Of a DNA stretch of 64,000 nt, positions 31,399 to 51,132 are shown in pieces (positions within the stretch are counted from its first letter, which is position 1; the number at the start of each line of letters is the position of its first letter). The notes below the pieces were generated by a model. It was given only the letters and a program-made list of their open reading frames with translations. It ran no database searches and was not told where the DNA came from. The stretch covers positions 62,001 to 126,000 of the IMG/VR virus record IMGVR_UViG_3300005537_000001; one strand, given 5' to 3'. A program made the position numbers and the translations under genes.

Positions 31399-32889
31399 AT
31401 GGCAGCAAAAAGAAAAGAATTTACGGTCGAGCAATACCTCTCTCCTTCCAAGAAGGATATTGAGTATATGCAGCCGGATCAGTTGAAAATCAGCTTGATC
31501 TGCCGCATGGACAGCTACAAGTTTGCGCACCCCTTCGCTTACCGTAAGGGAATTCAGGCGATGAGCGCCCACATGCTGGCGCGAGTCAAGAGCCACGTTA
31601 CGATCATTCCAGCCGGAATGCAACTGCTGACCAAGAAGTATCTAACGCAGCGCATCACGATGGCCGACGTGGACGCCGCAGAGCAATTTGCGATTGGTCA
31701 CTTTGGCCGCAAGCTCTTCGCTCGCGACAGCTGGGAAGGCGTTGTCAACGAGCATGGCGGAGCCATTCCCATCATCATCCGCGCGGTGCCGGAAGGTACT
31801 CGAATTCGCGGTGGGCAGCCGCTGTATTCAGTAACGGCGTTCGGTGAGCTGTATTACTGGATGTCAACCGCCTTCGAAACGCTCCTGCAGCGCGGTATCT
31901 GGTATCCAACGACCATCGCCACGATGGACTACGATATCAAAAATGATATTCGTATGTTCTACGAAGATACTGGCGCGGACATGGCGATGCTTCCATTCGC
32001 TCTCCACGATTTCGGTGCTCGCGGTGTGACCGCACCCGAACAGGCAGAAATTGGCGGTTTTGCCCACACGATTGGATTCATGGGTTCAGACAACATCGAA
32101 GGAATACTTACCGCAAACTTCTACTACAAGTGCGCGATGTCGGCTTTCTCGGTCTACGCTACCGAGCACAGCGTTGAGTGCTCCTTCGGGCTGGGTTCTG
32201 AGGATGAGGTTGAGTACATTCGACATCAGCTGCGTCAAGCTCCAGCTGGATCGATAGTTTCGATCGTCATCGACGGTAAGGATACCTACCGAGCAACCGA
32301 AGCGATCTGCACAACGCTTCGAGATGAGGTGATCGCGTGCAAGGCGAAGGTAGTTCTTCGCCCAGACAGCGGTGATATGCAGGAAATCGTTCCTCGCCTG
32401 CTCCGCCGGCTCGATCAAGCGTTTGGGCACGTCGTTAACAAGAAGGGCTTCAAGAAGATCAACTACGTTGGTATCCTGCAGGGAGACGGAGTCGATCACC
32501 TCGCGATTCGCAGCCTGCTTGGCAACATCATGTCGCGTGGATATTCGGCCGACAACGTTATCTTCGGCAGCGGAGGTGCGCTGCTGCAGAAGGTCAACCG
32601 TGACACCTACAAGTTCGCCCAAAAGGCGAGCGCCATGATGGTTGATGGGAAGTGGATTGGATTGGCGAAAGATCCCATCACCGACAAAGGTAAGAAATCG
32701 GAGGAAGGCGTGCTCACCTTGCTTCGCAGTCGAATGACCGGAGAGCTGATGACCGGTCGGTTGGACGATGGTCCATTCGACACCGAGTGGGAAGATGTTC
32801 ACCAGCTTGTCTATCACTGCGGCCGTCTCTTCAACGAGACAACCCTCGATGAGGTTCGCAATCGGGTTGAAGCCCTAGGAAACTACTGA
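31399..32889 (+). CDS. nadV: nicotinamide phosphoribosyltransferase
   Basis: DSYK..H, HDFG.RG, ATEHS, RPDSGD, QGDGV, FGSGG.LLQK..RDT. Confidence 0.93.
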   Translation: MAAKRKEFTVEQYLSPSKKDIEYMQPDQLKISLICRMDSYKFAHPFAYRKGIQAMSAHMLARVKSHVTIIPAGMQLLTKKYLTQRITMADVDAAEQFAIGHFGRKLFARDSWEGVVNEHGGAIPIIIRAVPEGTRIRGGQPLYSVTAFGELYYWMSTAFETLLQRGIWYPTTIATMDYDIKNDIRMFYEDTGADMAMLPFALHDFGARGVTAPEQAEIGGFAHTIGFMGSDNIEGILTANFYYKCAMSAFSVYATEHSVECSFGLGSEDEVEYIRHQLRQAPAGSIVSIVIDGKDTYRATEAICTTLRDEVIACKAKVVLRPDSGDMQEIVPRLLRRLDQAFGHVVNKKGFKKINYVGILQGDGVDHLAIRSLLGNIMSRGYSADNVIFGSGGALLQKVNRDTYKFAQKASAMMVDGKWIGLAKDPITDKGKKSEEGVLTLLRSRMTGELMTGRLDDGPFDTEWEDVHQLVYHCGRLFNETTLDEVRNRVEALGNY

Positions 32890-33092
32890 TGAATTCCATT
32901 GACCTCTGCGGGTTGATCAAGGGAATGAAGCTGCCGGCGGCGATAGCTGAAATCGAAAAGGCCGGGTGTACCGCGCGGTACACCTACCTTAACGGTAAGA
33001 ACCTGGTTGACAATGTAACGAGCGATTTCGTTGATACCCGCCTCAACCTTCGGGTTGAGCGCGACATCGTTAAGCACGCGAGAATCGGTTGA
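32889..33092 (+). CDS. peptidase inhibitor I78-like small protein
   Basis: VTSDF...RLNL.V...I...G. Confidence 0.5.
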   Translation: MNSIDLCGLIKGMKLPAAIAEIEKAGCTARYTYLNGKNLVDNVTSDFVDTRLNLRVERDIVKHARIG

Positions 33093-33250
33093 GCAAGAAG
33101 CCAAAATTCAAGAAGGTAACGATACCGGTAGGCAAGCGCTGCTTGTATTGCCGAGGTACCGGGCTGAAGCGAGCGTATGATCCGACGCGGACCGACGATT
33201 GCACGTGCTACTATTGCGCCGGCACCGGTTACGACGGAACCCGGTCATGA
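33055..33250 (+). CDS. DnaJ-type CxxCxGxG zinc-finger mini-protein (start uncertain)
   Basis: CLYCRGTG and CYYCAGTG; stop overlaps pnuC ATG. Confidence 0.55.
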
Positions 33251-33819
33251 TCCTCGAAATCGCAGCAAACGCTGTTACCGCGGCATCGATACTTCTCGCA
33301 ACTAGAAACAGCATTCATACCTGGTGGACTGGCATAATCGGCTCACTGCTGTTTCTCGCGCTGTTCTATCTCAACCAGCTCTACGCCGATTCGATGCTGC
33401 AAATTTTCTTCGTCGCTACCAGCTTGATGGGATGGTGGCAGTGGAAGCACTTTCGGGGTAAGAAAGTAGATAGGCCAATCTCCAAAACGGATGGTTCTAC
33501 CGCCATCATTATCTCGTGCTTAGCGATCGTAGCGACCATGGGATATGGATGGCTGCTAAAAACATTCACGAATGATTTTATGCCCTACGTCGATGCCGCG
33601 GTAATGGCGCTCAGCATAATCGCGCAGTGCCTGCTGATGCAGCGCAAGCTTGAAAGCTGGTGGGTTTGGGTAGTCGTGAATACCATCTCAATTCCTCTCT
33701 ACGCCTCACGTGGAATGTATGTTACGGCGGCGCTCTACGCTGCCTACTGGATCAACGCATGGATTGGAGCAGCATCATGGAAAAACATAGCGCGGTCTCA
33801 AATGTTGAGCGCGGCATGA
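33247..33819 (+). CDS. pnuC: nicotinamide riboside transporter
   Basis: W..GII, LYAD..LQ.FF...GW..W, DA....SI.AQ.L...K..E.W..W. Confidence 0.9.
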   Translation: MILEIAANAVTAASILLATRNSIHTWWTGIIGSLLFLALFYLNQLYADSMLQIFFVATSLMGWWQWKHFRGKKVDRPISKTDGSTAIIISCLAIVATMGYGWLLKTFTNDFMPYVDAAVMALSIIAQCLLMQRKLESWWVWVVVNTISIPLYASRGMYVTAALYAAYWINAWIGAASWKNIARSQMLSAA

Positions 33820-33966
33820 GCGAAGAAACGTGGCGGTGGAACGTCGGTGAAGGTACAGAGGAGCAGAGAAATCTCGCTCTCATCTACTGCGCGATGGATC
33901 ATCCGAATCCAGTAACTCGTCACGTCTGCCGTGAAATCTTGGCGCGGAAGTTAACGGAGAAATCAA

Positions 33967-34977
33967 GTGAAGACATACGGCCTAATCGTCGGTAAGTTCT
34001 CCCCGCTTCACCGCGGTCATGAGCACCTCATCAGTGAAGCTGAAAAACAGTGTGATAGCCTGTTGGTTCTGAGCTACTCGAATCCGGAATTTCGCAAGTG
34101 CGAGGCAAAGATTAGAAAAGAATGGTTGCAGGCACGGTTTCCTTCGGTTCGCTGCGTCGTTCTTGACCCGATTAATTTTCCATCGATGCCAGACAACCAA
34201 GCGAGCGACGCTGAACAGCAGGAATTTTTCAGCTGGATAGTCAACGACGTTTTGGAATATCCGGTGACCCACCTGTTCGCTAACGAGCGATGGGCTGAAA
34301 AGTGCGCACTAAACCTTTCGATTGGCGCGGGGCACCATGTAACAGCGGTAGCATTGGATCCACTGCGGGTGAAGAATCCGATCAGCGCGACATCCATCCG
34401 AGAAGCTCCACACCTCAACGCAAATTGGATGTCACCATTCGTTCGCGCGTCATACGTTACGCAGAAGATAGTTCTTCTTGGTGGTGAATCAACGGGTAAA
34501 ACGACTCTCGCGAAAGCCCTTGCTGAAAAATTCGATACCAGCTGGGTACCTGAATATGGCCGTGAGCTGTGGGAAGAAAAGAATGGTGAGCTTGTTTTTA
34601 GCGACATGTTGAGAATCGGTCATGAGCAGAAATTTCGTGAAAAGTATTTCAACATCGGCGCTAATCGCTATCTCTTCTGCGATACCTCTCCTCTTACCAC
34701 GATGGGGTACAGCATGTGGCTGTACGGTAAAGTTGATGACAAGCTCGTGAAGCTGGCTGAAGAACTATACGACGGCGTCATTTTTTGCCAGGCAGATTTT
34801 GCGCACGTGAACGACGGGACGAGAGTTGGGCATGATTTTCGAAGCATGCAGCAAGATTGGTACAAGCACGTCATTCCGAAGATGAAGTGCCCAATCATCT
34901 CGGTGACCGGTACCATTGAGGAACGCGTTCTTACCGTGACCAACTGGCTGAAGACATCCAACCACAATTGGAACTAG
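33967..34977 (+). CDS. nadR: NadR-like NMN adenylyltransferase/ribosylnicotinamide kinase
   Basis: GKFSPLHRGH; GGESTGKT; EYGR; DT. Confidence 0.92.
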   Translation: MKTYGLIVGKFSPLHRGHEHLISEAEKQCDSLLVLSYSNPEFRKCEAKIRKEWLQARFPSVRCVVLDPINFPSMPDNQASDAEQQEFFSWIVNDVLEYPVTHLFANERWAEKCALNLSIGAGHHVTAVALDPLRVKNPISATSIREAPHLNANWMSPFVRASYVTQKIVLLGGESTGKTTLAKALAEKFDTSWVPEYGRELWEEKNGELVFSDMLRIGHEQKFREKYFNIGANRYLFCDTSPLTTMGYSMWLYGKVDDKLVKLAEELYDGVIFCQADFAHVNDGTRVGHDFRSMQQDWYKHVIPKMKCPIISVTGTIEERVLTVTNWLKTSNHNWN

Positions 34978-34985
34978 GAGATAAA

Positions 34986-37194
34986 ATGAAGGCGATGATG
35001 CTCGCTTTACTGTTGATCGGTGCCGCTCAGGCGGATGAGCTTGATGAGGTAGTTGTAACAGCTTCGCGGCAAGGTATCCAGTCGCTCCAGAAGATACCAG
35101 CTTCCATCACGGTAGTTGACCTAAAGGCTGAAGGACGCCTTGGAGCTACCGATCTCAGCGATGTCGCTAATTCGATTCCATCTCTCACCATCGAGCAAGG
35201 TGGACCAGGGTTAAACAAGATTGACATCCGTGGAATTACCGTTGAAAATGCCGACGTTCTCAACAACATCGACAGCAGACCTCTTGTCGCGGTCTACGTT
35301 GACGATACCCCGCTCGCCCTCGACGGCTTCAATCCGGATCTTAAGGTATTTGACCTTGACCGCATCGAGGTGCTGCGCGGTCCTCAGGGCACCCTCTACG
35401 GTGCCAGCTCCATGGCCGGCACGATTCGCTACATCACGAAAAAACCGAATCCCCAGGAATATTCTGGATCCGATGAAATTACGGTTTCAGATACGGTTGG
35501 CGGCGGCGTCAACTACGGCATCAAGGCGAGCGTCAACCTCCCGCTCAGCGCTCAAACGGCGCTGCTACTAAGCGGATACAACGCGCGCAATTCTGGATGG
35601 ATCAACAACATTCAGAATGGTCAGAACGGTGAAAATTGGGATCGGTCAACTCAAGGTCGAGCCGCGCTGCGTTGGACGCCGTCTGACTATTTCACCCTCG
35701 ACGCGAGCGTTCTCTTCGAGGAGCTTAACACCGGTGGAAGCAACTTTTCCTTCTCGGGCTTGGGCAAGAACGAATACGCAAGCTTAACTCCAACTCCAAT
35801 CACCGACAACATGAAGGTGTACAACCTAACCGAAACGATTACCCCGGATTTCGGTACTATCATCTCCTCAACCTCGTACACCACGCGAACTACCGGTTTC
35901 AACGACCAGGGGCAGTACCTTTCGGAGCTGTTCTTCGGAGTAACCGAGCCTACCACCTACGTCAACCAGAACACCCTGTCGCAGTTCTCCCAGGAATTTC
36001 GAGTCGTTTCTCGCCAAGATCAGCGCACGCGCTGGATTGTTGGCACCTTCTTCAATCACCTCAGCCGCGTCAACTACCAAGATGACAGCGGCGTCGGTTT
36101 TGGGCAGTACATTGGCTTCGATCCTCGAACGATCGGTGGATTTACGGCGGACAGCGTTTTCTCTGGAACTCAGGGCGTTAGGGAACGCGATTTTGGCATC
36201 TTTGGTGAGGTTACGTGGGCGCTAACGGATCGCCTCGACTTTACGGCCGGAGCCCGCTACTTCAACTGGCGACAGCGCTTCAACCTGCAGTTTGGTGGAC
36301 CAGGTGGATACGGAGCGTACGATACCGGCAGCAACGTTGTCAACAAGCAGCTCATCGAGGACGTTGGAGCTAAGGCGCAGGGAGTCAACCCGCGCTTCAT
36401 CGTTAGCTACAAGCTTTCCGATGACGCTATCGTCTTCGCCGAGGCGGCTGAAGGATTTCGCTACGGTGGTGCGAACGAGGCGGTACCAAACGCCAACGTT
36501 CCTGGCGCGTGCGGTGGGCAGCTGCAAAGTCAATTTCACCTGACTTCAGCTCCACCGTCCTACGGCCCAGATCACCTGTGGAGCTACTCGCTTGGTGAGA
36601 AGTCGCTCTTCCTTGACGACAAGCTTCGCGTCAACGCGACCATCTTCCTCATCGATTGGAAGAACGTGCAGGAGGCTGCCTACCTCGGTTCTTGCTCGTA
36701 TACGTACACAACCAACGCTGGAACGGTTATTAGCAAGGGCGGAGAGCTGGAAGCGACCTACAAGCTGGCACGCTATCTTACGCTCGGAATTAACGGATCC
36801 TTTACCCATGCCGCGGCAGATGGTGCTCTTCCCAACGTTGGAGCTCAAAGCGGAGATCTTACTCCGTACAGCCCAGAATGGCTTGGAGCCGCAACTGTTG
36901 ATTACAAGCTTGGTTTCAGCCGGTTGAACGTTGAATATTCGTACCACGGTCGAAGCGGAACGCGCTTCGACCCAGCTGATCCCAGCTACGTAGTTCTACC
37001 AGCCTACAAGAATCTCAATCTGGCTGAAACGTTCGAAGTTCGGTAGGACGCAGGTTAGCTTGTTCTCGCGGAACGCGTTGAACAGCTCACAGGTAACGAT
37101 GATCTACCCGGATCTTCTCGGCACTCAGCCTGGAAATCAGGTAGCGTACGCCAGACCCAGAACCATTGGGGTTCGATTCTCACAGCAATTCTAG
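34986..37194 (+). pseudogene. TonB-dependent receptor with +1 frameshift near 37041
   Basis: signal peptide, EVVVTA, plug RIEVLRGPQGTLYG; 50-aa tail ...PRTIGVRFSQQF in next frame 37042-37194. Confidence 0.88.
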
Positions 37195-37364: not shown

Positions 37365-38444
37365 TTGTCAAATCCCCGCCTACTTTTTATAGTCAAGCGT
37401 CGTGAAGACTATTCCGACGACACCTCATACTCCTACCAAGGTGTATCGACCGGCCTTTGGAACTCAGCTAGATTTGTCGTTGACATGCTCAATAGAAATC
37501 ACATTGAAGCAAAGCTTGTAGAAGTTATCGACAACAATTGCATAGACAGAGAAGTCTTCAACTACAAACCAACTGACGTCATCATTGAGGGCCTGTGGGT
37601 CGTTCCAGAAAAATTCGAAGTCCTTACCAAGCTCCACCCGACGGTAAAGTGGAATATCCGACTGCACAGTGATCTACCATTCTTAGCGAATGAAGGTATC
37701 GCTATGCAATGGATTACCGATTACGTAAAGTTTCCTTCAGTTTCGATATCGACGAATTCTCCTAGAATGCTTGACGAGCTAACATTCTTGCTAGATCTTC
37801 AAAACTATTGGTCAGATGAAGAGCTACGCGAGAAGGTTTACTACACACCAAATTACTACATGCCAGCCATCGTAAGCCCAGCTGATAAATTGTCTATCGA
37901 CTATAGGGATTACATTGACGTTGCCTGCTTTGGCGCAATTCGTCCTTTGAAGAATCAGTTGCTTCAGGCTATCGCCGCCCTAAAGTTTGCTGATGATCTC
38001 GGTAAAAATTTGAATTTCCACGTCAATGTGGGTAGAGTAGAAAATAAAGGAGATCCAGTTCTACGCAACCTCATCGATTTATTTGACTCAGTTAGCGCCC
38101 AAGGTCATACCCTTGTTATGCACCAATGGACCACACACGATAAATTCATCGAAATAGTTCGCAACATGGATATCGGATTGCAAGTCTCATTTACGGAAAC
38201 ATTCAACATTGTTTCTGCTGACCTGGTTGCATGTGGTGTTCCAATCGTCGTATCTAAGGAGGTCAATTGGGCTGTACCTCCACATGCTGATCCTACCGAC
38301 TCAAATGACATAGCGCGTAAGATGAAGCTCGTTTGGGAATTCAAGCGCTGGGATTGCATGAACCTGAATGCGTCTGCCAATCTCGATGCCCTGAAGGAAT
38401 ATTCTCGCAAGTCGATTAAGATTTGGAAGAAGAAATTCGTCTAA
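37365..38444 (+). CDS. GT-B (GT4-like) glycosyltransferase
   Basis: RPLKN and ETFNIVSADLVACGVPIVVS. Confidence 0.75.
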   Translation: MSNPRLLFIVKRREDYSDDTSYSYQGVSTGLWNSARFVVDMLNRNHIEAKLVEVIDNNCIDREVFNYKPTDVIIEGLWVVPEKFEVLTKLHPTVKWNIRLHSDLPFLANEGIAMQWITDYVKFPSVSISTNSPRMLDELTFLLDLQNYWSDEELREKVYYTPNYYMPAIVSPADKLSIDYRDYIDVACFGAIRPLKNQLLQAIAALKFADDLGKNLNFHVNVGRVENKGDPVLRNLIDLFDSVSAQGHTLVMHQWTTHDKFIEIVRNMDIGLQVSFTETFNIVSADLVACGVPIVVSKEVNWAVPPHADPTDSNDIARKMKLVWEFKRWDCMNLNASANLDALKEYSRKSIKIWKKKFV

Positions 38445-38473: not shown

Positions 38474-39148
38474 GTGCAGATGGATGCACCTCTATCATTC
38501 AATGCTTTAGCAGCAGCTGAACGAACTATCAGTTCGAACGCGTTCTTTTACATCGTCGCCCACAACATCCTCAACCACACAGCACTTTCTGTTGTTAGGA
38601 TGGGTGATGGCGAGCGCCTTCTGCTCGATGCAAATGGCGCCGATGGTGAAATCATTCGCCGATTCGATGACGCATGGTTAGAAAGAATGGGTTTGACAGG
38701 GATGACTTATGGTGAGCTTCGGCGGCGATTGCAGCTCGCGGTAGACACCACTCAATATTTTGCGCCATCCATAACCGGCCTAGTCAACAAAAGTTTCGAT
38801 CTTCACTCGTATTTTTCCCATAAGAAGCTCGTGGACAATTTCTTTATCAACCAATGGGACGCTGCTCAAAAAGAAGAACTCTTGATGAAGGCCGATGGTG
38901 TCCTTTTAATTCACGCAAATGCTGAAATCGCTGACGCGATGCAGCGCAAGTATACCAGATTCAAAGTTTCATTCTTGAAACTGTCAATGTGGGATCAAAC
39001 TGAAGATGTGATCGCTAAATCGCGAACCAATCCTGCACAACTCGTTCTATTTTCTGGTGGCTGCGCTGGAAAATACATTGGTCCTGCGATCGCCAAGCAG
39101 GGAAAAGTAGTTATCGACGTTGGTAACTCGATGAGCGTTTGGCTGTAA
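38474..39148 (+). CDS. GT-D-fold glycosyltransferase-like protein
   Basis: SVVRMGDGE and VIDVG; promoter TTTACA-17-TATAAT at 38445. Confidence 0.65.
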   Translation: MQMDAPLSFNALAAAERTISSNAFFYIVAHNILNHTALSVVRMGDGERLLLDANGADGEIIRRFDDAWLERMGLTGMTYGELRRRLQLAVDTTQYFAPSITGLVNKSFDLHSYFSHKKLVDNFFINQWDAAQKEELLMKADGVLLIHANAEIADAMQRKYTRFKVSFLKLSMWDQTEDVIAKSRTNPAQLVLFSGGCAGKYIGPAIAKQGKVVIDVGNSMSVWL

Positions 39149-39217: not shown

Positions 39218-39517
39218 ATGGGTAAATTGACTGTCAATCCTGATTCAGGGCTCTCTGATGTAGAAGTCAAGAAGCTCGAAAAGATCTTCGCGAAGCTGGA
39301 AGATAAGGTAGAAAAGCTCAAGCCCCTCGAAAAGGCTGCCGAAGAGTATTTCGATCTTCTCTATGAACTCGGTGAAGATATGAATGAGCTCTCTGAAGAT
39401 CAAGAGCACATCCTACTTGATGGTGACGAAGATTCATTCTACGTCAACGAGGACAACCCTTTGTCTGGCGCGTCAGGTACATTCGGGTTCTGGGTTCCAT
39501 CGTCGATGGAGTGCTAA
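39218..39517 (+). CDS. FW[IV]PSSM[ES]C-tail paralog 1
   Basis: ends FWVPSSMEC. Confidence 0.85.
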   Translation: MGKLTVNPDSGLSDVEVKKLEKIFAKLEDKVEKLKPLEKAAEEYFDLLYELGEDMNELSEDQEHILLDGDEDSFYVNEDNPLSGASGTFGFWVPSSMEC

Positions 39518-39518
39518 C

Positions 39519-39833
39519 GTGGCAAAGTTTACACTTACCGAAGGTTCAGAACTGACACCCGCTCAAGTTAAGCGGCTCAAGGCATCCTTCACGAGGATTG
39601 AGGCGAAGGCTGAGAAGCTCCGTCCGCTGGAAAAGAAGGTGATTGCCGCCAACGCGGTGATTGAAAAGTACCTCGAAAAGCTGTATGAGCTTGGTGAGGA
39701 ATTCCAATCTGAATTAAGCCATGATTCTGATCAATTTCTGGTGAATGGCGATGAAATCTACTTCGGCGATTATCCTGAAGCCGCGATAGCCAACGCCTTC
39801 GACTTCTGGATTCCCTCATCGATGTCCTGCTAG
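39519..39833 (+). CDS. paralog 2
   Basis: GTG start; ends FWIPSSMSC. Confidence 0.85.
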   Translation: MAKFTLTEGSELTPAQVKRLKASFTRIEAKAEKLRPLEKKVIAANAVIEKYLEKLYELGEEFQSELSHDSDQFLVNGDEIYFGDYPEAAIANAFDFWIPSSMSC

Positions 39834-39841
39834 GAGTGACC

Positions 39842-40132
39842 ATGTCTAAATTCACCATCAACGACAGCGCCAATCTCACCGCCGCTGAAACCGAAAAGCT
39901 TCAGGCCACCTTCAAGGAATTTGAAGAACGAGCCGAGAAGCTCAAGCCACTCTCCGAGCAAATCGAAAAGTATTTCGATGAGCTCTACACACTTGGCGAC
40001 GACATGAACAACGCGTTCGGTTCGTACGAAATCGACTACGGTGACCGAGAATTTTACGCCAACGTGGACAACCCGGTGGCTGGAGCGGCCTATACCTTCG
40101 ATTTCTGGATTCCCTCATCGATGGAGTGCTAA
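39842..40132 (+). CDS. paralog 3
   Basis: ends FWIPSSMEC. Confidence 0.85.
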   Translation: MSKFTINDSANLTAAETEKLQATFKEFEERAEKLKPLSEQIEKYFDELYTLGDDMNNAFGSYEIDYGDREFYANVDNPVAGAAYTFDFWIPSSMEC

Positions 40133-40135
40133 ACG

Positions 40136-40411
40136 ATGGCTATTTTCAAAATCAATAAAGATGCGAAGCTGACTACCGCTGAAGTCGATAAGCTGAAGGA
40201 AGCCTTCGTAAGCTTGGAGGCTAAGTATCAGGAAGTAAAGACCCTGGAAGCTCAAGCTAGTCAGTACTTCAGGTCACTCTACGAGCTGGGTGAGCAGCTG
40301 AGCGAAATTCGCGCCTATCGAGAAGATTACACGATGGACGGGGAGGAAGCTTGGGTTGGTGAAGCTGGATATCCGACCGGCTTTTGGGTTCCATCGTCGA
40401 TGGAGTGCTAG
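40136..40411 (+). CDS. paralog 4
   Basis: ends FWVPSSMEC. Confidence 0.85.
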   Translation: MAIFKINKDAKLTTAEVDKLKEAFVSLEAKYQEVKTLEAQASQYFRSLYELGEQLSEIRAYREDYTMDGEEAWVGEAGYPTGFWVPSSMEC

Positions 40412-40470
40412 TGTACTTTTGCCAGGTTTTAGTGTAAGATATCTTATCTAAACCGATGAGGGCTGAAACT

Positions 40471-40764
40471 ATGGCTGCATTCAAGATCAATGATAGCGCG
40501 AAGCTGACCGCCACCGAGGTCAACAACCTGCAGAAGGCCTTTGAGAAAATTTCGGCTAAGATCGAGGAGGCAAAGGCCCTCGAGCGGCCGGCGCGAGATT
40601 ATTTTAGCGCTCTCGAAAGCATCGGTGAACAGCTGATCGAGCTTCACAAGTACTCCGATGATATCACCTACAACGATCACGAAGTTTGGATAGACCAGGA
40701 TAATTACTACGGCACCGCCCAGAGCGTAGTGCGATTCTGGATTCCTTCCTCGATGAGCTGCTAA
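40471..40764 (+). CDS. paralog 5
   Basis: ends FWIPSSMSC; own promoter at 40411-40440. Confidence 0.85.
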   Translation: MAAFKINDSAKLTATEVNNLQKAFEKISAKIEEAKALERPARDYFSALESIGEQLIELHKYSDDITYNDHEVWIDQDNYYGTAQSVVRFWIPSSMSC

Positions 40765-40765
40765 C

Positions 40766-41701
40766 GTGCTGCTCATCGGCTCTCACGCTGCGATCCTAAA
40801 CGGTCTTCCGCTCACCCGCAAGCCCATCGACATCGATCTGATAATGTCGCCGAGCGATTTTGTGCAGCTCAAGGAGTTCCTCAATGACGACATCGAGCGA
40901 ACAATCCTAATTGACAAGAGGCGGGTCGCCCTCAAGCTGAAGTCCAGTGAGATCGTTGAAATCGAAATCGCCTGGCCCGATTCTAGCGCCGAGTGGCTGC
41001 TTCGCGGTGATCTGATGTGCCCTGAGATTCCCTTCTTCAGGATAGCTGAAATTCAGGTGGGACCACATACCCTATCGGTAGATGTTCCGCTGCTCAACGT
41101 GCTCCTCGCGCTCAAGCTGTCCCACCGCTACAAGAAAAATTCGCCGCACTTTCTCAAGACGATGCACGACATCCACGCGCTGCGGAAGACGGGAGCTGAC
41201 GTTGACGGTCTTCAAGACTTCATCAAGCTGCGCGAGAAGGAAACTTACGACTACGCGCATCCGAGCTTGAAGCGCGACAAGAAGAACTTCTTCAAGGACG
41301 ACGGCATCAAGTACGTTTACGACCACGACTCCATCCACGAGGCGGTGGCGCTTGGTGACAAGCCGGCCTACCGCTCTTTCTCGGCGGAAGGACAGGAAGT
41401 TTACTCCTCCAAGGAGCTGTTCAACAAGTGCTCCGAGCAGCTGAAGCTGAGCGCCGTCGTAGAGGAATCCTATGTGCTCGCGCTGGAACGCAGCCAGATT
41501 CCGTTCAAGGGTCAGGTAGATCCGGATCGATCATTCACCATGGCGCTGCAGAAGGTTTGCACCTCCATTACGAGTGGTTGGTTCCGCGAATATGCGTGGG
41601 AACATTACTGGGAAGCTATGTCGATGTATTCTCCCGACTACGTCAATGTGTTCTGGAACGCAGTCGAGAAGAACAAGGTCAAACCTCATAAGGTGACATG
41701 A
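40766..41701 (+). CDS. nucleotidyltransferase-like phage protein
   Basis: LIGS.A...DID at N-terminus; K..SH, DHD..H. Confidence 0.6.
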   Translation: MLLIGSHAAILNGLPLTRKPIDIDLIMSPSDFVQLKEFLNDDIERTILIDKRRVALKLKSSEIVEIEIAWPDSSAEWLLRGDLMCPEIPFFRIAEIQVGPHTLSVDVPLLNVLLALKLSHRYKKNSPHFLKTMHDIHALRKTGADVDGLQDFIKLREKETYDYAHPSLKRDKKNFFKDDGIKYVYDHDSIHEAVALGDKPAYRSFSAEGQEVYSSKELFNKCSEQLKLSAVVEESYVLALERSQIPFKGQVDPDRSFTMALQKVCTSITSGWFREYAWEHYWEAMSMYSPDYVNVFWNAVEKNKVKPHKVT

Positions 41702-42315
41702 TGAATGAATCGCGTGGGCATCATTTAATTAAACAGCCAAAGAAAAGAATAGGATCTAGTGGTGGTGGGTCATGGTGGACATCAACTCCTCGGCGGCTTG
41801 CTTGTAAATTTCGAGCACGTGAGCTAATTGAAATTGAATTAGGAGGAGAAGAGCTCATGCTCAGTGGTAGGGGCATTTATAGCACCGTACCGAAAATATT
41901 TGAGCAAGTAAAATCTGAATTCCCAGATGTTTTTGAAGAATATTTGAGAGATAAAGGTAAGGATATTACGCAAAAAATTTTGGGTGATAGAGTTCACAAA
42001 ATGTACTATTCCTACTTGCCTAAAGAAGGAAAGAAATATCATGGTAGATCAACTGAACATCCAATTTTTAATGGTGAAAAGAATACTGAGCCAAGTGATA
42101 GATGGACCATAAAGCCGAAACAAATCGGTATGGACATCAAGCTGGTTATAATTGTTGATGATCAAGCTTACGAAGGTAATCACGACAAGCTTGTTGACAT
42201 AATTCGTGCTGACATACTTGCTAAGGGTAAAAATTGGTCTAGATATGAAAGAACTAGATATGATGGTAAGGGATTACGTGGTGGCGCTGAAGTTTGGTCT
42301 AAAATAGAAAAATAA
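41698..42315 (+). CDS. AT-rich hypothetical protein
   Basis: ORF track; visibly lower GC. Confidence 0.6.
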   Translation: MMNESRGHHLIKQPKKRIGSSGGGSWWTSTPRRLACKFRARELIEIELGGEELMLSGRGIYSTVPKIFEQVKSEFPDVFEEYLRDKGKDITQKILGDRVHKMYYSYLPKEGKKYHGRSTEHPIFNGEKNTEPSDRWTIKPKQIGMDIKLVIIVDDQAYEGNHDKLVDIIRADILAKGKNWSRYERTRYDGKGLRGGAEVWSKIEK

Positions 42316-42835: not shown

Positions 42836-42910
<75 letters not shown>

Positions 42911-42915
42911 TTTTT

Positions 42916-43001
42916 GGGTGTGTATGCAAGAGGCCAAAGCGCGCAGTCTGTAAAACTGACTCCTTCGGGATTCGTAGGTTCGACTCCTACCGCACCCACC
43001 A
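42916..43001 (+). tRNA. tRNA-Tyr(GTA)
   Basis: cloverleaf, long V arm. Confidence 0.92.
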
Positions 43002-43005
43002 TTTT

Positions 43006-43139
43006 AGCAAACCGTTGATTAGGATTATCTGGCGCAGTGAGTTTCGATACCACGCCTACAGGTGCTAACATCTGTAGAGCCTCAGTTTAGGGAGAGGCAT
43101 CTGACCGCCTACGGGCACCCCTATCGCTCTTTGTTTGCT
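43006..43139 (+). ncRNA. element copy 1, permuted, around T-arm-like/acceptor/D-arm pieces
   Basis: AGCAAAC-CG..GATTATC ... TTT-GTTTGCT. Confidence 0.7.
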
Positions 43140-43217
43140 CTTTTAAAGGGACACGGCTGCAGTTGTGAACGTGGAGAAATCCATTCGGTGGCATGCTGCA
43201 GCAACCTCCCTACTTTT

Positions 43218-43324
43218 TGCAACCGCTTAAAGAAGGTTATCTAAGTTCAACTCTTAGGCTGCTCACGCAGTCACGGCATATCCTCACGGATACGGCGCCA
43301 ACTCCGTCTTTTACCTTTGTTGCA
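43218..43324 (+). ncRNA. element copy 2, permuted
   Basis: TGCAAC-CG..GGTTATC, CTAAG-TTCAACT-CTTAG T-arm, TTT-GTTGCA. Confidence 0.7.
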
Positions 43325-43524
43325 TTTCTTTCGAAGTGTCTCGTTAAAAACGGGTCTTACAGGTCCACGAAGATCGAGTCAACCGTCACTTTGAATCCTT
43401 CCTCTTGATCGACTAAGCCAAAAGTCACCGGCTCACGATGCTGGAAACGTCGCATAACCGACTGTAGAGGACCATTTTACAGCTACCAGAACGATCTCTG
43501 CTTAAGCAAATCGCTGGGGCTCCT

Positions 43525-43598
43525 GCGGGTTTGGTATAGAGGTTGTGCCAAAGCCTTCCAAGCTTTAGAGGCGGGTCCGAGTCCCGCAACCCGCTCCA
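43525..43598 (+). tRNA. tRNA-Gly(TCC)
   Basis: cloverleaf. Confidence 0.9.
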
Positions 43599-43783
43599 AT
43601 TTAATCCTTCCCGAGATGATGTGAAGGGCTGGTCTTCGCCAGTGAAGCTGGACAACCCAGCGATCATCAAATACTACTCTGCTGCATCCGGTAACAAGGG
43701 CCTAGGTAAGCTCTTGGGGTGCAGTGGGACCAGTGAAAGTCTGGCGCATGGATCGCTTGCGAAACGGGTCCCTTGAATTTTAT

Positions 43784-43871
43784 GCGCTTGTAGGCGAATT
43801 GGCATAGCCACTGGTTTGAGGTACCAGAACTCGAAAGGGTCCTGTGGGTTCGAGTCCCACCATGCGCACCA
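43784..43871 (+). tRNA. tRNA-Leu(GAG)
   Basis: cloverleaf. Confidence 0.9.
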
Positions 43872-44202
43872 AATACAGGAATTAAATTCCTCCGGAAGTC
43901 CGGCGTGCGGGTTCCACGATAACGCGCCCAACATCTAAGTCCTATTTGAGAACGCGGGTTGAAATCCTCCCCTCATCTAGGCGCATTTTTGTTCGCTGGT
44001 AAGCAAACGGTACATAGCCGTGGGTCTAACTGTCGGAATTAGCCGGCTCATTGACGAGCAAGTGACAGTCGAACAAATTAAACCCGACCGAAGCTGATTT
44101 AGTTCGGCTTAGCGTAGAAGAACCGCCGCAGGATATTGCGGCGAGACGGGCATCGCCACTCAGGGCGTCTGGGCACAGCCCATAAGTACTGAGACGATTT
44201 AT

Positions 44203-44280
44203 AGCGGATGAGTGAAACGGTTTACATTCAAGGCTCATAACCTTCGAGACACTAGGTTCGACTCCTAAGATCCGCTACCA
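44203..44280 (+). tRNA. tRNA-Met(CAT)
   Basis: cloverleaf; Met versus Ile2 not certain. Confidence 0.8.
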
Positions 44281-44308
44281 CCAGGTTAGGGTGATGCATA
44301 AATAACTA

Positions 44309-44944
44309 ATGCATCACCTTTTATACAAAACCACAAATATTCTCAACAATCGCTTCTACGTTGGGATGCACTCTACTAAGAACCCTAAAGACAGGTATCT
44401 TGGGAGTGGCAAGCGAATAAAGTACGAGATCCAAAAGTATGGTAAAGAAAACTTCAAGAGAGAAATCTTGGAGGAGTTCCCAACTCGTAAGGCGCTCGAA
44501 GATGCTGAAGCAGAAGTCGTGAATGAGGAACTTCTTTCCGATCCTCTCTGTCTCAATTTGAAAAATGGTGGAGAAGGTGGTGGTAGAATATGGAATTCTA
44601 ACCATGCAAAGAAATTTCATCGGGCTGGTTGGGAAGCGATGCATAGAAACAAAGATCATGTAGCAGCCGGATTAAAATCGGGTAAAACTAGAGAAAAAAG
44701 AAATCAAGAAGGATTGTACCCTCCTGGAACTTTTACGAGTCATTTTGGTGGAATGCAGCATTCTGAAAAATCTCGTGCGCAGATGAAAAATACTCATGCT
44801 AGAAACGCTCATCAGCGGGCTGAAAAAAATTCAAATTTTGGCAAGCGAAATGCTTGTGTTAACAAGGACGGAAAGAATAAAAGAATTCCACTAGATCAAC
44901 TTGAAATGTTTATAACTGATGGATGGACTAAAGGTCTAGTTTAG
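44309..44944 (+). mobile_element. free-standing GIY-YIG (Seg-like) homing endonuclease
   Basis: LLYKTTN..N.FYVG.H....D.YLGSG. Confidence 0.85.
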
Positions 44945-45015
44945 AAATACGTTTTTCGAGGTGGCGGAGTTTCCACCATTTGTAGGCCATGGATGGCCCA
45001 AAAGTTTACGCGAAT

Positions 45016-45105
45016 GCCTGGGTGGCGAAATTTGGTATCCGCGGCGGGCTTAGAACCCGTTGATCTTGATCGGTCGTGCAGGTTCGAGTCCTGTCCCAGG
45101 CACCA
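45016..45105 (+). tRNA. tRNA-Leu(TAG)
   Basis: cloverleaf. Confidence 0.9.
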
Positions 45106-45179
45106 ATTAGCGTCGGCAAAACCGACGAAAGCGCGGGCAGCCATTGTGATTTAGAGATCACGTATGGTCCGCGCAGTTT

Positions 45180-45259
<80 letters not shown>

Positions 45260-45465
45260 AAATTCGCTCAACAAGAGCGCGTCAGTTTGATCGGAAAAAT
45301 CCAGTGTTCACCTGGATAATGCACTGCAAGGCCAAATGTCCTAGGAAACTTTTGGTACTCAGTTATTGGTAGAAGAAATAGAGAGTAAGCTTCTCAGAAA
45401 TAAGCTACCAAGCTAAAAGCAAACGGCAGCGGGGCTAGCGTTGTCCATAACGATCAATTTAATTC

Positions 45466-45540
45466 GGGGGTATGTTGAAGCTGGGATCATAAGACGTTCG
45501 CAACGTCTAGTCGCGAGTTCGACTCTCGCTACCTCCACCA
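45466..45540 (+). tRNA. tRNA-Ala(CGC)
   Basis: G3:U70. Confidence 0.85.
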
Positions 45541-45556
45541 AATCTAGGAGAATAAT

Positions 45557-45739
45557 ATGAACCCATTAGATCAAGAGGAACACATCAAGCGCATCGTTTG
45601 CGAAAGTCAAACGTATACTGAAGTGATTAAGAAGCTGGGTTTCTCCAAGAATGCAAATTATGAGTGGATCGTCAATTTTATCAAGGAAAACAACCTTAAG
45701 TTGAAACCACTCTCGTTCGAGAACGCTAATTTAAGTTAG
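45557..45739 (+). CDS. small hypothetical protein
   Basis: AGGAG RBS. Confidence 0.6.
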   Translation: MNPLDQEEHIKRIVCESQTYTEVIKKLGFSKNANYEWIVNFIKENNLKLKPLSFENANLS

Positions 45740-45787
45740 CTGCAGTAGAAGTCTGCCGTTTGGGCGTCGAAAAGTCCACAAGATTAC

Positions 45788-45913
45788 GAGGTAATAGCTC
45801 AATAGTAGAGCATCAGGGAAGTAGAAGAAATAGGAACTACGCTGAAGTACAAAGCGACTATCTAAAGTATTGAAAACCGGAAGACAATGGTGCGATCCCA
45901 TTTTACTTCACCA
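45788..45913 (+). tRNA. tRNA-Phe(GAA)-like gene with 52-nt insert
   Basis: acceptor, D and T arms intact; TTGAAAA loop after insert. Confidence 0.65.
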
Positions 45914-46021
45914 TCAAATAAAGCTGCTACGAGCGAGTGAAAAATAGCAGCGCCGCCGGAAACGGTCCCACCTGGAGTGGTTAAGAGAATCTCGCATGCG
46001 GCAGAAATGCCGTCTCTTTAT

Positions 46022-46166
46022 GAAGTTGTAGGGAAGTGGTTAAACCCAGCGAAGCCGAAAGGCATATCCATTCTCGCCTTTTGTTGCGCAAGCAACCGAT
46101 AGAAAATGGTTATCATTAAGTCGCTGCCGAAAGGCTACGCCGGTTCGAATCCGATTGCCAACTTCA
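46022..46166 (+). tRNA. Tyr-like tRNA body interrupted by element copy 3 (46066-46114)
   Basis: GAAGTTG/CAACTTC acceptor; anticodon unresolved. Confidence 0.55.
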
Positions 46167-46219
46167 CTCCCAATCTTTTTGCTGGTTCTTATAAATATTC
46201 TCGTAAGGAGAATTTTAAA

Positions 46220-46930
46220 ATGAAGCCTGCAAAATATGTAAGACAAGAAAATCGAAAATATCACTACATTTACAAAATTACTCGATTTGATAATCATTAC
46301 TATTATGGCCGTCATTCAACGGATAATTTAGATGATGGATATTTTGGTAGTGGCAAACGTCTTTGGCATTCCATAAATTATCATGGCATAGAAAAACACA
46401 CTAAGGCGATTTTGGAATATCTTCCAACACTAACCTCTCTAAAAATAAGAGAAAGCCAGATAGTAAATGAAACATGTCTAAATGATCCCCTCTGCTTGAA
46501 CCTCCAATTAGGAGGTGGTGGTGGATTCATTAGTGAAGAACATCAGCGAAAGGCCTCATTAGCAGGTAGAGATAAAGCTCTCACTGCAATGAGGGAAATT
46601 TTTAAAAGTGGTAGCGAAGAAGCGGCGCGAAGAGCAAAAAATTCTGCTGCTACTCAAAAGCGTATGAGGCAAAATGGTGAGTTAACATATACCAAAAGAG
46701 AGCGAAATAACATCACCACTGTAGCCGCAACATTAGCCGCCGCCACTCCTAAATCTAGGGAAAAGAAAAAGAAAACATTTGCTGAGCGAAAACATCAGCA
46801 GGGTGAAAAGAATTCAAATTTTGGAAAGAGAAATGCTGTCATCAACAAAGATGACAAGAATAAGAGAATCCCTCTGTCAAAATTAGATGAGTATCTAAAT
46901 GCCGGATGGACCAGAGGTCTAATACGATAG
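46220..46930 (+). mobile_element. second GIY-YIG (Seg-like) homing endonuclease
   Basis: YIYKIT...YYG.HST....D.Y.GSG; C-terminus shared with 44309. Confidence 0.85.
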
Positions 46931-47012
46931 GGAGGTTGTCTATGTCATCGCTAAACGCAACAAGGGTAATCTACGCCACAGCGTAGGTGGAACCACCGCA
47001 AAATTTAGAAGG

Positions 47013-47273
47013 ATGTGCGAGGTATATCGATACTTCTCGCGTCACTGGGAACACGTTTTAGATTTTAGCGACGAGTCGCTAGTCGAACTGTTCAACCATG
47101 AGTCCTACGGAACTCCATGTTCACCAAAGAACGGATTTCTAGTAGGCAAGCAGCACCTTAACGTCAACGTTGCCATGTGGAAGGAAGACATCATCAAGGG
47201 AGTTCTGTTTAAACAGGAACTTTACGATGGTGAATTTCCAACTTGGTGGCTTGACAGTATTTTCAGGGTATAG
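47013..47273 (+). CDS. hypothetical protein
   Basis: ORF track. Confidence 0.6.
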   Translation: MCEVYRYFSRHWEHVLDFSDESLVELFNHESYGTPCSPKNGFLVGKQHLNVNVAMWKEDIIKGVLFKQELYDGEFPTWWLDSIFRV

Positions 47274-47338
47274 CTCAGCGGGAGAGCGCTCGTTTTGGAA
47301 ACGAGAGGTCGCACGTTCAATCCGTGTTACCCTGACCA
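47264..47338 (+). tRNA. tRNA-Pro(TGG)
   Basis: cloverleaf. Confidence 0.88.
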
Positions 47339-47401
47339 CTTTATACGTCCACCATGCTGTGGAATGTGCACCTAAGACCGTCACGCGGTCTTTGCCTATA
47401 T

Positions 47402-47477
47402 GCCACTTTAGCTCAGCTGGTAGAGCAAAGGTTTTGTAAACCTGAGGTCGTGGGTTCGATCCCTACAAGTGGCACCA
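47402..47477 (+). tRNA. tRNA-Thr(TGT)
   Basis: cloverleaf. Confidence 0.9.
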
Positions 47478-47625
47478 AATTCAGCTCTCGCAAGAGAGTT
47501 CGAGCGCGGCTCGAAGGCGCTCCGATGCTGTCCAGCGCGACAGTGGCTTTCTTCGAAAGGCGGATTCGAACCGCCGGGTTAGTAGCCAGTGATTGTTAAT
47601 CTCAAAACCCCGAAAAATTTTTCAT

Positions 47626-47748
47626 GAGGAAGTAGCTCAGTGGCAGAGCAGCCGCCAAACATCGTTTACGATATTTTGTCGAGCAATCGACCGTTGTATA
47701 ATGGTTATCCAAAGCAGCTTGTCGTAGGTTCGAATCCTATCTTCCTCT
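47626..47748 (+). tRNA. tRNA-Trp(CCA)-like gene interrupted by element copy 4 (47661-47709)
   Basis: GAGGAAG/CTTCCTC acceptor; TCCAAA directly after element. Confidence 0.65.
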
Positions 47749-47782
47749 CTTATTCTTTGAATATACGATTGATAAATATCGT

Positions 47783-48325
47783 ATGGCAAATCAATTTACA
47801 AAAGCAAAGGCATTAGGATTACCCAATCCTATACCATCCGAAGCTACATTAAAGAAATGGTCAGTTTCAGCTACAATAACCAATAATCGTAGATTTTCAG
47901 ATCCCAAAAATAGGGATCGTCAAAGTGCAGCTATGAAGCTTGCTGTTGAGAAATATCCAGAATCTTATGGTCCTTCGAATAGAGGTAGAACCAAGCGGAT
48001 AGATAAACATGGTCAAGCCTTTCAGGGAAAGTGGGAGCTGTATTTCTTTGAATGGTGCTTAGAAAATAACGTGGAAATTAAACGAGTTACTGAATCATTT
48101 CCATATGAATGGAATGGTAGTAGAAAATATTTTCCGGATTTTTATTTACCACAACTCAGCATGTATGCTGAAGTTAAGGGATATGAAACTCCTAGAGATT
48201 TAGCAAAATGGCGTGATTTTCCACATCGTCTAAAAATTATTAGGCGGGCGGATATCGAAAAGATATTAAAGAGGAATTTTGATTTAGGGTCTCTAGCTCA
48301 ATTGGTTAGAGCAGGAAACTCATAA
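47783..48325 (+). CDS. PD-(D/E)XK endonuclease
   Basis: Y.PDFY......EVKG. Confidence 0.8.
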   Translation: MANQFTKAKALGLPNPIPSEATLKKWSVSATITNNRRFSDPKNRDRQSAAMKLAVEKYPESYGPSNRGRTKRIDKHGQAFQGKWELYFFEWCLENNVEIKRVTESFPYEWNGSRKYFPDFYLPQLSMYAEVKGYETPRDLAKWRDFPHRLKIIRRADIEKILKRNFDLGSLAQLVRAGNS

Positions 48326-48363
48326 TTTCTTGGTTGCGGGTTCAAGTCCTGCGGGACCCACCA
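48287..48363 (+). tRNA. tRNA(CAT), Ile2-like
   Basis: body resembles bacterial ileX-type tRNAs. Confidence 0.85.
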
Positions 48364-48370
48364 CATATTT

Positions 48371-48445
48371 GCGACTGTAGCTCAGGGGTAGAGCAAACGA
48401 CTGATAATCGTTAGGTCGTAGGTTCAAATCCTACCTGTCGCACCA
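48371..48445 (+). tRNA. tRNA-Ile(GAT)
   Basis: cloverleaf. Confidence 0.92.
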
Positions 48446-48461
48446 TCAAAACGAGGAACAA

Positions 48462-48767
48462 ATGAATCGCGAACTCATCTATGTATTTCCGGATTATTGC
48501 TCCACCGGGTTGTGGAGAGCATCGACGGGTGTAAATCTTGAACCATCGAGTCTTGGTATATCTTCGGGCTTGCAGATAGCCCTAAAGTACTGGCACGCTC
48601 ACTGGGAACTCAACTTGACCGACATGGATAACTTGACATCGGATAGTCAAACTGATCTAACTTATGGTCAGAAAAGAGCCTTTGCGAGATGGACTGTTGA
48701 TGGCTACGAGCTTGCCCGTCGAATGACAAATGAGAGTGAGCGATACGAATTTCAATTCAAAGAATAA
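48462..48767 (+). CDS. hypothetical protein
   Basis: GAGGA RBS. Confidence 0.65.
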   Translation: MNRELIYVFPDYCSTGLWRASTGVNLEPSSLGISSGLQIALKYWHAHWELNLTDMDNLTSDSQTDLTYGQKRAFARWTVDGYELARRMTNESERYEFQFKE

Positions 48768-48918
48768 AGTTTTACTGCAAGAGCTGGAGGACGGGGGTAT
48801 CACCGAAATTGACCTCTCCTCGTTGGGCAGCGGCTAGTCGGTATGCCGGTTGTGTTGGAGCGTGATTTCACGCTGTCTTGGAGGAAACTAACAAGGCGTT
48901 GCGAGCACAAATTTTTAC

Positions 48919-49001: not shown

Positions 49002-49006
49002 GTTTA

Positions 49007-49102: not shown

Positions 49103-49110
49103 AAATCTAT

Positions 49111-49401: not shown

Positions 49402-49408
49402 TTATCAC

Positions 49409-50865: not shown

Positions 50866-51132
50866 ATGAATTTTGAAGAAGAGCTTAACAAGCTGGTGGC
50901 AGAATCTGGAAGCGCTACAACTCCAGAAGAACATCTCGCTATTCTTCGCAAGCTGCAGAAGCTTTTTGAGGACAACCGTAAACACGCGTACGATCATGGT
51001 GTTGAAACGTCAGCTTCTTACTATGACAACCCGGCGTACTGCATCATGGAAAATGCTGAGAACGGTGGGATCAACGTTTACACGGCAACCAACTACTACG
51101 AGTGGTTGCCATCGAGCTGGGATCGATGTTGA
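50866..51132 (+). CDS. distant W.PSS..C-tail protein
   Basis: helical N-terminus; ends EWLPSSWDRC. Confidence 0.65.
   Translation: MNFEEELNKLVAESGSATTPEEHLAILRKLQKLFEDNRKHAYDHGVETSASYYDNPAYCIMENAENGGINVYTATNYYEWLPSSWDRC

Follow-up and report, generated by a model that had tools for sequence, protein, structure and literature searches.

A two-gene phage module pairs a MenT-fold nucleotidyltransferase with small acidic proteins that share a Trp-Ser-Cys tail

The window analysed here is the whole 64,000-nucleotide (nt) stretch of DNA at positions 62,001 to 126,000 of IMG/VR virus record IMGVR_UViG_3300005537_000001, a complete virus of 368,054 bp with direct terminal repeats that was assembled from a soil metagenome. 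Between positions 39,218 and 41,701 it carries five tandem genes for small acidic proteins with a shared C-terminal tail, followed by the gene for an enzyme of the Pol-beta nucleotidyltransferase superfamily. We are highly confident that this region is one copy of a real, functionally linked two-gene phage module, and the linkage between the two genes is tight and ancient. The pairing of a near-invariant tail, on acidic proteins that otherwise evolve fast, with a neighboring MenT-fold enzyme clearly points to a nucleotidyltransferase system, protein-directed or protein-regulated, that has gone unrecognised. The six genes are arranged as follows.

39218..39517, + strand: tail protein 1, 99 amino acids (aa), isoelectric point (pI) 4.1, end FWVPSSMEC; open reading frame (ORF) and independent 99-aa gene call, AGGA 9-10 nt before the ATG
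39519..39833, + strand: tail protein 2, 104 aa, end FWIPSSMSC; GTG start 1 nt past the stop of gene 1
39842..40132, + strand: tail protein 3, 96 aa, end FWIPSSMEC; AGGAG 5 nt ahead of the start ATG (39842), 96-aa gene call
40136..40411, + strand: tail protein 4, 91 aa, end FWVPSSMEC; ORF, alignment and gene call
40471..40764, + strand: tail protein 5, 97 aa, end FWIPSSMSC; 59-nt gap before the gene, gene call of 97 aa
40766..41701, + strand: MenT-like Pol-beta-superfamily nucleotidyltransferase, 311 aa, GTG start; from Pfam, phrog_2141 and AlphaFold2 (AF2) fold

The linkage was measured on 80 diverse viral contigs picked by the enzyme alone, in which we counted the tail pattern among stop-to-stop ORFs of at least 40 aa. 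The strict pattern was an ending of the form W-x-x-S-S-x-x-C or W-x-[SG]-S-x-C. It was found in 124 of 921 same-strand ORFs (13.5%) whose end lies no more than 2 kb upstream of the enzyme, in 11 of 2,421 same-strand ORFs downstream of it, and in 4 of 6,149 ORFs (0.07%) on the opposite strand. Sixty of the 80 loci hold one to five strict copies and most of the others have loose variants or copies just downstream; the gene order may flip, with the genes still no more than 2 kb apart. All-against-all clustering of the neighbours in these loci gave no other family common to more than 13 of them, and the tail family is the sole neighbour conserved across the set. Metallophos, ATP-dependent ligase, PNKP and Sir2 genes recur beside the enzyme in subsets of loci only, and a conserved third gene was rejected on this basis. 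The strict pattern partly defines its own count, a circularity against which a profile search (described below) and a test in the reverse direction guard. The latter searched DNA for a pattern of the body motif F.F..AYGMGG and relied on neither the tail nor the enzyme; of the 20 viral loci that it retrieved, 18 were testable, and all 18 had the enzyme no more than about 1 kb away. The initial annotation of this DNA had put its proposal at risk on the co-occurrence of tail proteins and enzyme, which proved very strong in both directions.

The same arrangement can be read directly in named phages. The small protein upstream of the enzyme in Mx1 ends in GWVSSSQNC, those in RsoM2USA in GYWMGSSC and GWYPSSQSC, those in the E. 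coli phage ASO2A (Phapecoctavirus) in NWHPSSLSC, GVWHSSSC and GVWISSSSMC, and those in the RB69-like phage HX01 in GAWVSSSALC, GGWIASSHTC and QGWVSSSYSC. RB69 itself has the module, with ORF134c as the enzyme and ORF136c and ORF137c as tail proteins. Furthermore, RB69 ORF139c (71 aa) and ORF138c (33 aa, end GAWVSSPALC) together match a single 101-aa tail protein of HX01, indicating that a third RB69 copy has been split by a frameshift or a sequencing error:

NC_004928 locus 2435-2741, - strand: split third RB69 tail copy, from ORF138c/139c compared with HX01

In the HX01 locus (record NC_018855), one tail-family gene, at 1813-2085, is annotated as a 'tail completion protein', and a gene at 2343-2594, just upstream of the enzyme and without the tail motif, as a 'major capsid protein'. 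Both are almost certainly mis-annotations.

Within the window all five ORFs were found on the + strand, in agreement with the initial annotation, which had described five tandem acidic paralogues of 91-104 aa ending in FW[IV]PSSM[ES]C, and the lengths of 99, 104, 96, 91 and 97 aa agree with gene calls made independently on this contig. Each of the five is acidic (pI 4.1-4.8), with its sole Cys as the last residue. Alternative starts exist for tail protein 3 (GTG at 39836, giving 98 aa) and tail protein 5 (ATG at 40456, giving 102 aa; the GAGGG Shine-Dalgarno sequence belongs to the ATG at 40471), and the close metagenomic relatives of tail protein 2 are 103-104 aa long. The bodies had been called diverged and the tails constant, and indeed the bodies are 24-45% identical whereas seven tail residues (F, W, P, S, S, M and C) do not vary among the five copies. 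The codons for the tail Pro (CCA/CCC/CCT) and the first Ser (TCG/TCA/TCC) vary synonymously among the copies, so the tail is kept by protein-level selection and not by recent gene conversion or as a DNA repeat. The enzyme, with its GS at residues 5-6 and DID at 22-24, does begin 1 nt after the fifth stop as had been noted (TGC TAA C GTG), and the same TAA-C-GTG junction between genes 1 and 2 points to translational coupling along one operon. At several junctions the tail codons ATG-GAG hold the GGAG that is the ribosome-binding site of the following gene; the GGAG in the tail codons of gene 1, for example, is the Shine-Dalgarno sequence for the GTG start of tail protein 2. The promoter that the initial annotation had the fifth gene and the enzyme share is unsupported, as a scan for sigma-70-type promoters of the 59-nt gap before gene 5 (40412-40470) gave no consensus match.

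A family profile built from 26 diverse tail proteins matched the representatives of at least 1,009 clusters (50% identity), 598 with E ≤ 1e-10, and its matches extend to the last residue of the proteins. Among the best 150 of these clusters, 147 end in Cys, 146 read W-x-[SAP]-S-S-x-x-C and 88 have a single Cys, with a median length of 81 aa and a median pI of 4.5. The distance from the Trp to the terminal Cys is bimodal, either 7 (W-x-x-S-S-x-x-C, 88 distinct tails) or 5 (W-x-[SG]-S-x-C, 28 distinct tails). In the widest alignment, which joins the window copies to distant relatives, the Trp, the Ser at W+3 and the Cys are the only invariant columns. The family signature, a Trp, a Ser at W+3 and a Cys at W+5 or W+7 that is usually the last residue, is thus shorter than the 9-residue tail first proposed: that tail is constant in the five window copies, but its F, P, M and E/S positions are specific to this phage. 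A few members have one to four residues beyond the Cys, and in some (ASO2A and our loci L070, L072 and L032) the motif is repeated internally two or three times. The partner from Brevibacillus phage Sundance (locus L106, 2175-2456) has the tail EEEEYSSSYY twice, with neither Trp nor Cys. This ending in place of W-x-x-S-S-x-x-C suggests that the Ser run, rather than the Cys, is the most ancient element of the tail.

Common to the bodies are a long helix, a beta-hairpin that reads YGMGG.Y in most relatives, and a short helix. In the AF2 model of tail protein 3, with a predicted local distance difference test score (pLDDT) of 90.5, these elements span residues 16-61, 66-73 and 80-88 and are followed by a reasonably ordered tail. 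The single long helix of the model suggests that the proteins could form coiled-coil oligomers. Fold searches with this model returned generic coiled coils only (Z ≤ 4.3) and no fold relatives, and a PDB profile search with the tail family returned designed helical proteins only. Only two of the five window paralogues match phrog_899, and weakly (tail protein 3, E 0.0035; tail protein 5, E 0.0024), and the partners from Mx1, RsoM2USA, ASO2A and HX01 match it with E values of 6e-6 to 1e-22. The window copies share the architecture of this family, with W, S and C invariant, the helix and hairpin in register, and a position directly upstream of the enzyme.

The enzyme matches the Pfam domains of unknown function DUF7277 over residues 1-78 (E 7e-11) and DUF7275 over residues 112-288 (E 2e-69), with scores of 43.1 bits for PF23942 and 233.8 bits for PF23940 that place it in both families (cut-off 27 each), and phrog_2141 over residues 1-309 (E 7e-103). 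Relatives were detected by tblastn in 733 of 50,697 phage records (~1.4%), chiefly large myoviruses that infect Pseudomonadota; other carriers are Myxococcus phage Mx1, Brevibacillus phage Sundance and actinophages, and phage T4 does not have it. At 90% identity, 2,428 protein clusters match the enzyme. Comparison of 50 homologues (45-75% identical) shows 40 invariant residues, including G5, S6, D24, K117, H120, R121, D135 and H187-D188-x-x-H191, and a further 42 that at least 90% of the homologues share, including D22, E65, E67 and C265. The Pol-beta motifs hG[GS]...[DE]h[DE]h...h[DE]h are present as G5-S6, D22-I-D24 and E65-I-E67 on an alpha/beta core. Because these motifs are kept together with K117 and D135, the nucleotidyltransferase site is intact and the enzyme is probably active; fold and catalytic residues alike agree with the initial description of the gene as nucleotidyltransferase-like.

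The AF2 model of the enzyme has a pLDDT of 92.7 and a predicted template modelling score of 0.88, and its closest solved structure is MenT1 (8an4; Z 11.2, 154 residues aligned over the model range 1-281). Further matches were to MenT3/TglT (Z 9.3), ANT(2'')-Ia (Z 9.1), LnuA (Z 8.8) and MenT4 (Z 8.0), as well as to TM1012 and CCA-adding enzymes. The last ~130 residues gave no structure match above noise in the fold search. Several other assignments were tried and rejected. The H...HD...H residues raised an HD-phosphohydrolase as a candidate for DUF7275, and there was no HD-domain structure among the best 50 fold matches. Membership of AbiEii/DUF1814 was rejected in the absence of a PF08843 match, at E ≤ 0.1 for the protein and at E ≤ 1 across the 368-kb genome, and membership of RlaP in the absence of PF10127, the family definition given in a preprint (10.64898/2025.12.29.696909), among the Pfam matches of the enzyme at E ≤ 0.1. 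PDB sequence searches with the enzyme and with its profile gave no match, nor did PADLOC and NCBIfam searches, and the ESM Atlas matches were to DUF-named or unnamed clusters only.

We tentatively favor a reading, credible although short of probable, in which the enzyme recognises the tail and covalently modifies it. The initial annotation had likewise proposed that the tail is a substrate or docking tag, and had seen the variable bodies as putative diversified decoys or inhibitors. The enzyme would recognise the tail directly and use a nucleoside triphosphate (NTP) to modify the invariant Ser at W+3, adding either a nucleoside monophosphate (NMP) or, as MenT toxins do to the Ser/Thr of their own active site, a phosphate. 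The terminal Cys would have a part in recognition or in a later step, each paralogue would be directed to its own host target by its diverged body, and the module would serve to arm or switch several small effectors at an early stage of infection. This reading draws on the concentration of partner conservation in a short motif that offers both a hydroxyl and a thiol, on the service of up to five diverged partners by one enzyme, and on the ability of the motif to repeat within one protein; such repeats seem to fit a multi-site acceptor better than a plug. It also draws on the chemistry of MenT-fold active sites, which can transfer phosphate to a protein Ser/Thr hydroxyl, as at T39 of MenT1 and S78 of MenT3 (PMC11375011). 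Complex prediction for the enzyme with the fifth paralogue gave a score of 0.01, which neither supports nor opposes contact. We regard as quite improbable a new chemistry in which an NTP-activated tail Ser is coupled to the Cys, giving a thioether ring or another product, or in which the enzyme builds a nucleotide chain primed by that Ser.

Several observations weigh against modification of the tail. The predicted structure has the tail ordered and packed on the body (pLDDT ~82), not as a free flexible tag, and the nearest solved relatives of the enzyme target tRNA 3' ends or small molecules, not proteins in trans. Modification of the Ser leaves the role of the Cys unexplained. Furthermore, the enzyme occurs with no detectable tail gene in Gordonia phage Smoothie and a 96%-complete 141-kb contig, and the enzymes of such tail-less phages, Smoothie's excepted, keep nearly all the invariant residues, so that the enzyme may have another primary substrate. 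Tail genes may have gone undetected in some phages through divergence, since the window copies themselves barely reach phrog_899. On the other side, all the tail-associated enzymes that were checked, that of Sundance among them, retain the KVCTSITSGWFR motif, and the enzyme of tail-less Smoothie has lost it, a weak hint in favor of the tail-modification reading.

The fold of the enzyme raises another possibility, on the unlikely side in our judgement, in which it acts on RNA (tRNA 3' ends, in repair or host shut-off) and the small proteins regulate it as inhibitors, pseudosubstrates or specificity adaptors, the tail filling the active site or triggering auto-phosphorylation of S6. MenT1, MenT3 and MenT4 are the closest folds and match both lobes (model residues 1-281), and MenA1, a 7.4-kDa helical protein encoded just upstream of MenT1, blocks the MenT1 active site and induces auto-phosphorylation. 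Phages with the enzyme only would fit, as would the PNKP and ATP-dependent ligase genes that neighbor the enzyme in 7-9 of the 80 loci and the position of the enzyme just upstream of a tRNA array in both the window and Smoothie. However, a tRNA gene lies within 6 kb of the enzyme in only 16 of the 80 loci, a weak enrichment at most, and we did not retain tRNA linkage as a feature of the enzyme. Up to five fast-diverging partners per enzyme, together with distant orphan copies, are unlike a toxin-antitoxin pair, and the enzyme has no Pfam AbiEii match. In addition, the conservation here is in the Ser and Cys of the tail whereas MenA1 works by its N-terminal helix (PMC11375011), and repeats of the motif in a single protein are at odds with a plug. 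Synteny by itself shows only a functional link, and the two partners could act in the same pathway with no contact, for example in countering an RNA-targeting or nucleotide-based host defence, with a host factor reading the tail. Orphan tail genes far from the enzyme would agree with this, and in their general character the acidic helical bodies are like known inhibitor or mimic proteins of phages. We nonetheless judge it unlikely, given that the enzyme is the sole conserved neighbor across very distant phages of Pseudomonadota, Myxococcota and Bacillota hosts and that a tail read by the host should vary with the host, whereas W-x-x-S-S-x-x-C is nearly constant.

Two further explanations carry much less weight. 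It is very improbable that the tails are matured like ribosomally synthesised and post-translationally modified peptides (RiPPs), with an NTP-activated tail Ser converted to dehydroalanine and the Cys adding to it to close a lanthionine-type thioether ring. The Ser-Cys spacings of i+2, i+3 and i+4 match lanthionine ring sizes, several precursor-like genes lie beside one enzyme, the motif is repeatable within one protein, and the unique C-terminal part of the enzyme has many invariant His and Asp residues and the near-invariant Cys265. On the other hand, no LanB, LanM, LanKC, LanC, protease or exporter was found among the window genes or the recurrent neighbors, the constant part is the 'core' and the variable part the 'leader', opposite to the pattern of most RiPPs, and the Sundance variant has no Cys. 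We know of no nucleotidyltransferase that forms lanthionine-type crosslinks. The shared ending could also be a local artefact of recent tandem duplication, gene conversion or ribosome-binding-site constraint, and at three junctions the GGAG in TCG ATG GAG TGC TAA does lie 7-8 nt before the next start. We excluded this scarcely credible explanation on the basis of the synonymous differences inside the tail and the presence of the same tail in more than 1,000 distant clusters with unrelated downstream sequence; moreover, the bodies are only 24-45% identical, and the M-[ES] positions are precisely those that vary across the family.

Comparison with known systems places the module nearest to the MenT toxins. 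In the group of MenT1 with MenA1, MenT3, MenT4 and AbiEii, which are DUF1814 toxins of the nucleotidyltransferase type and their antitoxins, MenT1, MenT3 and MenT4 give the best two-lobe structure match (Z 11.2, 9.3 and 8.0), and the enzyme has the bi-lobed fold, the G-[ST] and D-x-D core, and a Lys and an Asp from the helical lobe. Like MenT1, it has a small helical protein encoded directly upstream, and the active site of MenT can phosphorylate a protein hydroxyl (PMC11375011). Unlike MenT and AbiEii, the enzyme has no PF08843 sequence match. It is also ~120 residues longer, its C-terminal helical part being unique, highly conserved and without a structure match, and it is accompanied by one to five partner genes with a Ser/Cys tail, as opposed to one antitoxin. 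The enzyme is found in lytic phage genomes, whereas MenT belongs to chromosomal toxin-antitoxin loci.

In HEPN-MNT type VII toxin-antitoxin systems, a Pol-beta-type nucleotidyltransferase covalently (poly)AMPylates its small protein partner, which makes them the nearest precedent for a neighboring small protein as the acceptor. In contrast to these systems, the small proteins here have neither the HEPN fold, being modelled as a long helix plus hairpin, nor the conserved R-x(4-6)-H (no Arg or His is conserved among them), the candidate acceptor is a C-terminal Ser and not a Tyr, and there are several partners. GlnD with PII and GlnE with glutamine synthetase are cases in which enzymes of the nucleotidyltransferase fold switch a protein by NMP transfer. 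They differ in that no HD or second nucleotidyltransferase domain was detected in our enzyme, the partners are unrelated, and the acceptor here would be a Ser rather than a Tyr. CitX and MdcG, which are also of the nucleotidyltransferase type, put a nucleotide-derived group on a Ser of a small acidic carrier in citrate lyase and malonate decarboxylase. The enzyme has no Pfam match to these, however, the candidate Ser lies in a C-terminal tail near a Cys, and no metabolic partner genes are conserved around the enzyme. RlaP is an RNA-ligase-associated Pol-beta nucleotidyltransferase of jumbo phages encoded near RNA-repair genes (PMC7824862); like it, our enzyme is a phage Pol-beta nucleotidyltransferase, with ligase and PNKP genes beside it in some loci, but the two belong to different Pfam families and no tail-protein partner is reported for RlaP. 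Among described antitoxins, HEPN proteins, carrier proteins and RiPP precursors, none resembles the partners.

Literature searches with the DUF and PHROG names, the motifs, the RB69 ORFs and phage AMPylation found nothing on either family, on the tail motif or on their linkage, and both families are in databases only as DUFs or unnamed PHROGs. We read the system as a Pol-beta nucleotidyltransferase with a dedicated small-protein partner, which could turn out to be categorically new if its chemistry is unusual. It could reveal a new post-translational switch in phage-host conflict or show how phages tame a toxin-type enzyme, and if new Ser chemistry is indeed involved, more than 1,000 phage small-protein families would be enzyme-armed effectors. 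Relatives of model phages that infect E. coli (RB69, phAPEC8-like), Pseudomonas, Acinetobacter, Aeromonas, Ralstonia and Myxococcus are among the carriers of the enzyme, and the system can be tested directly in E. coli with RB69.

A tail scan of the whole genome located two further family members far from the enzyme, so that the gene count of this phage, five tandem tail genes plus two orphans, is unusually high. One, 124 aa long and ending in NGWQSSSC, lies outside the window at genome positions 132105-132479. The other is inside the window, within the tRNA array:

50866..51132, + strand: orphan family member, 88 aa, end EWLPSSWDRC; from the whole-genome tail scan and translation

Directly upstream of the five tail genes are two glycosyltransferase genes, one GT4-like (37365-38444) and one of the GT-D fold and DUF1792-like (38474-39148). 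GT-D enzymes are known from serine-rich repeat proteins, which they O-glycosylate. The two genes could be linked to the Ser-rich tails, but this possibility is unsupported, and glycosyltransferases are not conserved neighbors of the enzyme overall in the 80 loci. Downstream, the start of a gene for a 205-aa basic protein (pI 9.5, 41698-42315) overlaps the enzyme stop (ATGA); this protein has no Pfam, PHROG, PADLOC or NCBIfam match and other phages do not conserve it beside the enzyme. Another lineage has an unannotated gene of 434 aa between the enzyme and the tail genes (locus L107, 1304-2608).

The tRNA array begins 1.1 kb past the enzyme and extends over 42836-56011 and 62199-62272, with 22 tRNAs called by ARAGORN and a few additional ones by Rfam. 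Genes for a GIY-YIG endonuclease (44309-44944) and an SLT_2 transglycosylase (49609-50622) interrupt it, as does the orphan tail gene. Two of the Rfam tRNA matches, at 45788-45910 and 47626-47748, span 123 nt and may contain introns, and the tRNA at 62199 has a CUA (amber-reading) anticodon. Elsewhere in the window, positions 30211-37046 hold a salvage block for nicotinamide adenine dinucleotide (NAD+), with genes for a nicotinamide mononucleotide adenylyltransferase-Nudix protein, NAMPT, a PnuC transporter and a NadR-like kinase. It is followed by a full-length gene for a TonB-dependent receptor with plug and barrel domains, which is unusual in a phage. A permuted two-piece transfer-messenger RNA (tmRNA) gene lies at 28274-28555 (Rfam RF04321, 75 bits) and encodes the tag peptide ANDAFFGEELRLAA. 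Permuted tmRNAs are typical of Alphaproteobacteria, and together with a match to the Rhizobiales small RNA Atu_At1 at 53953-54062, which falls exactly at the threshold, the permuted tmRNA hints at an alphaproteobacterial soil host.

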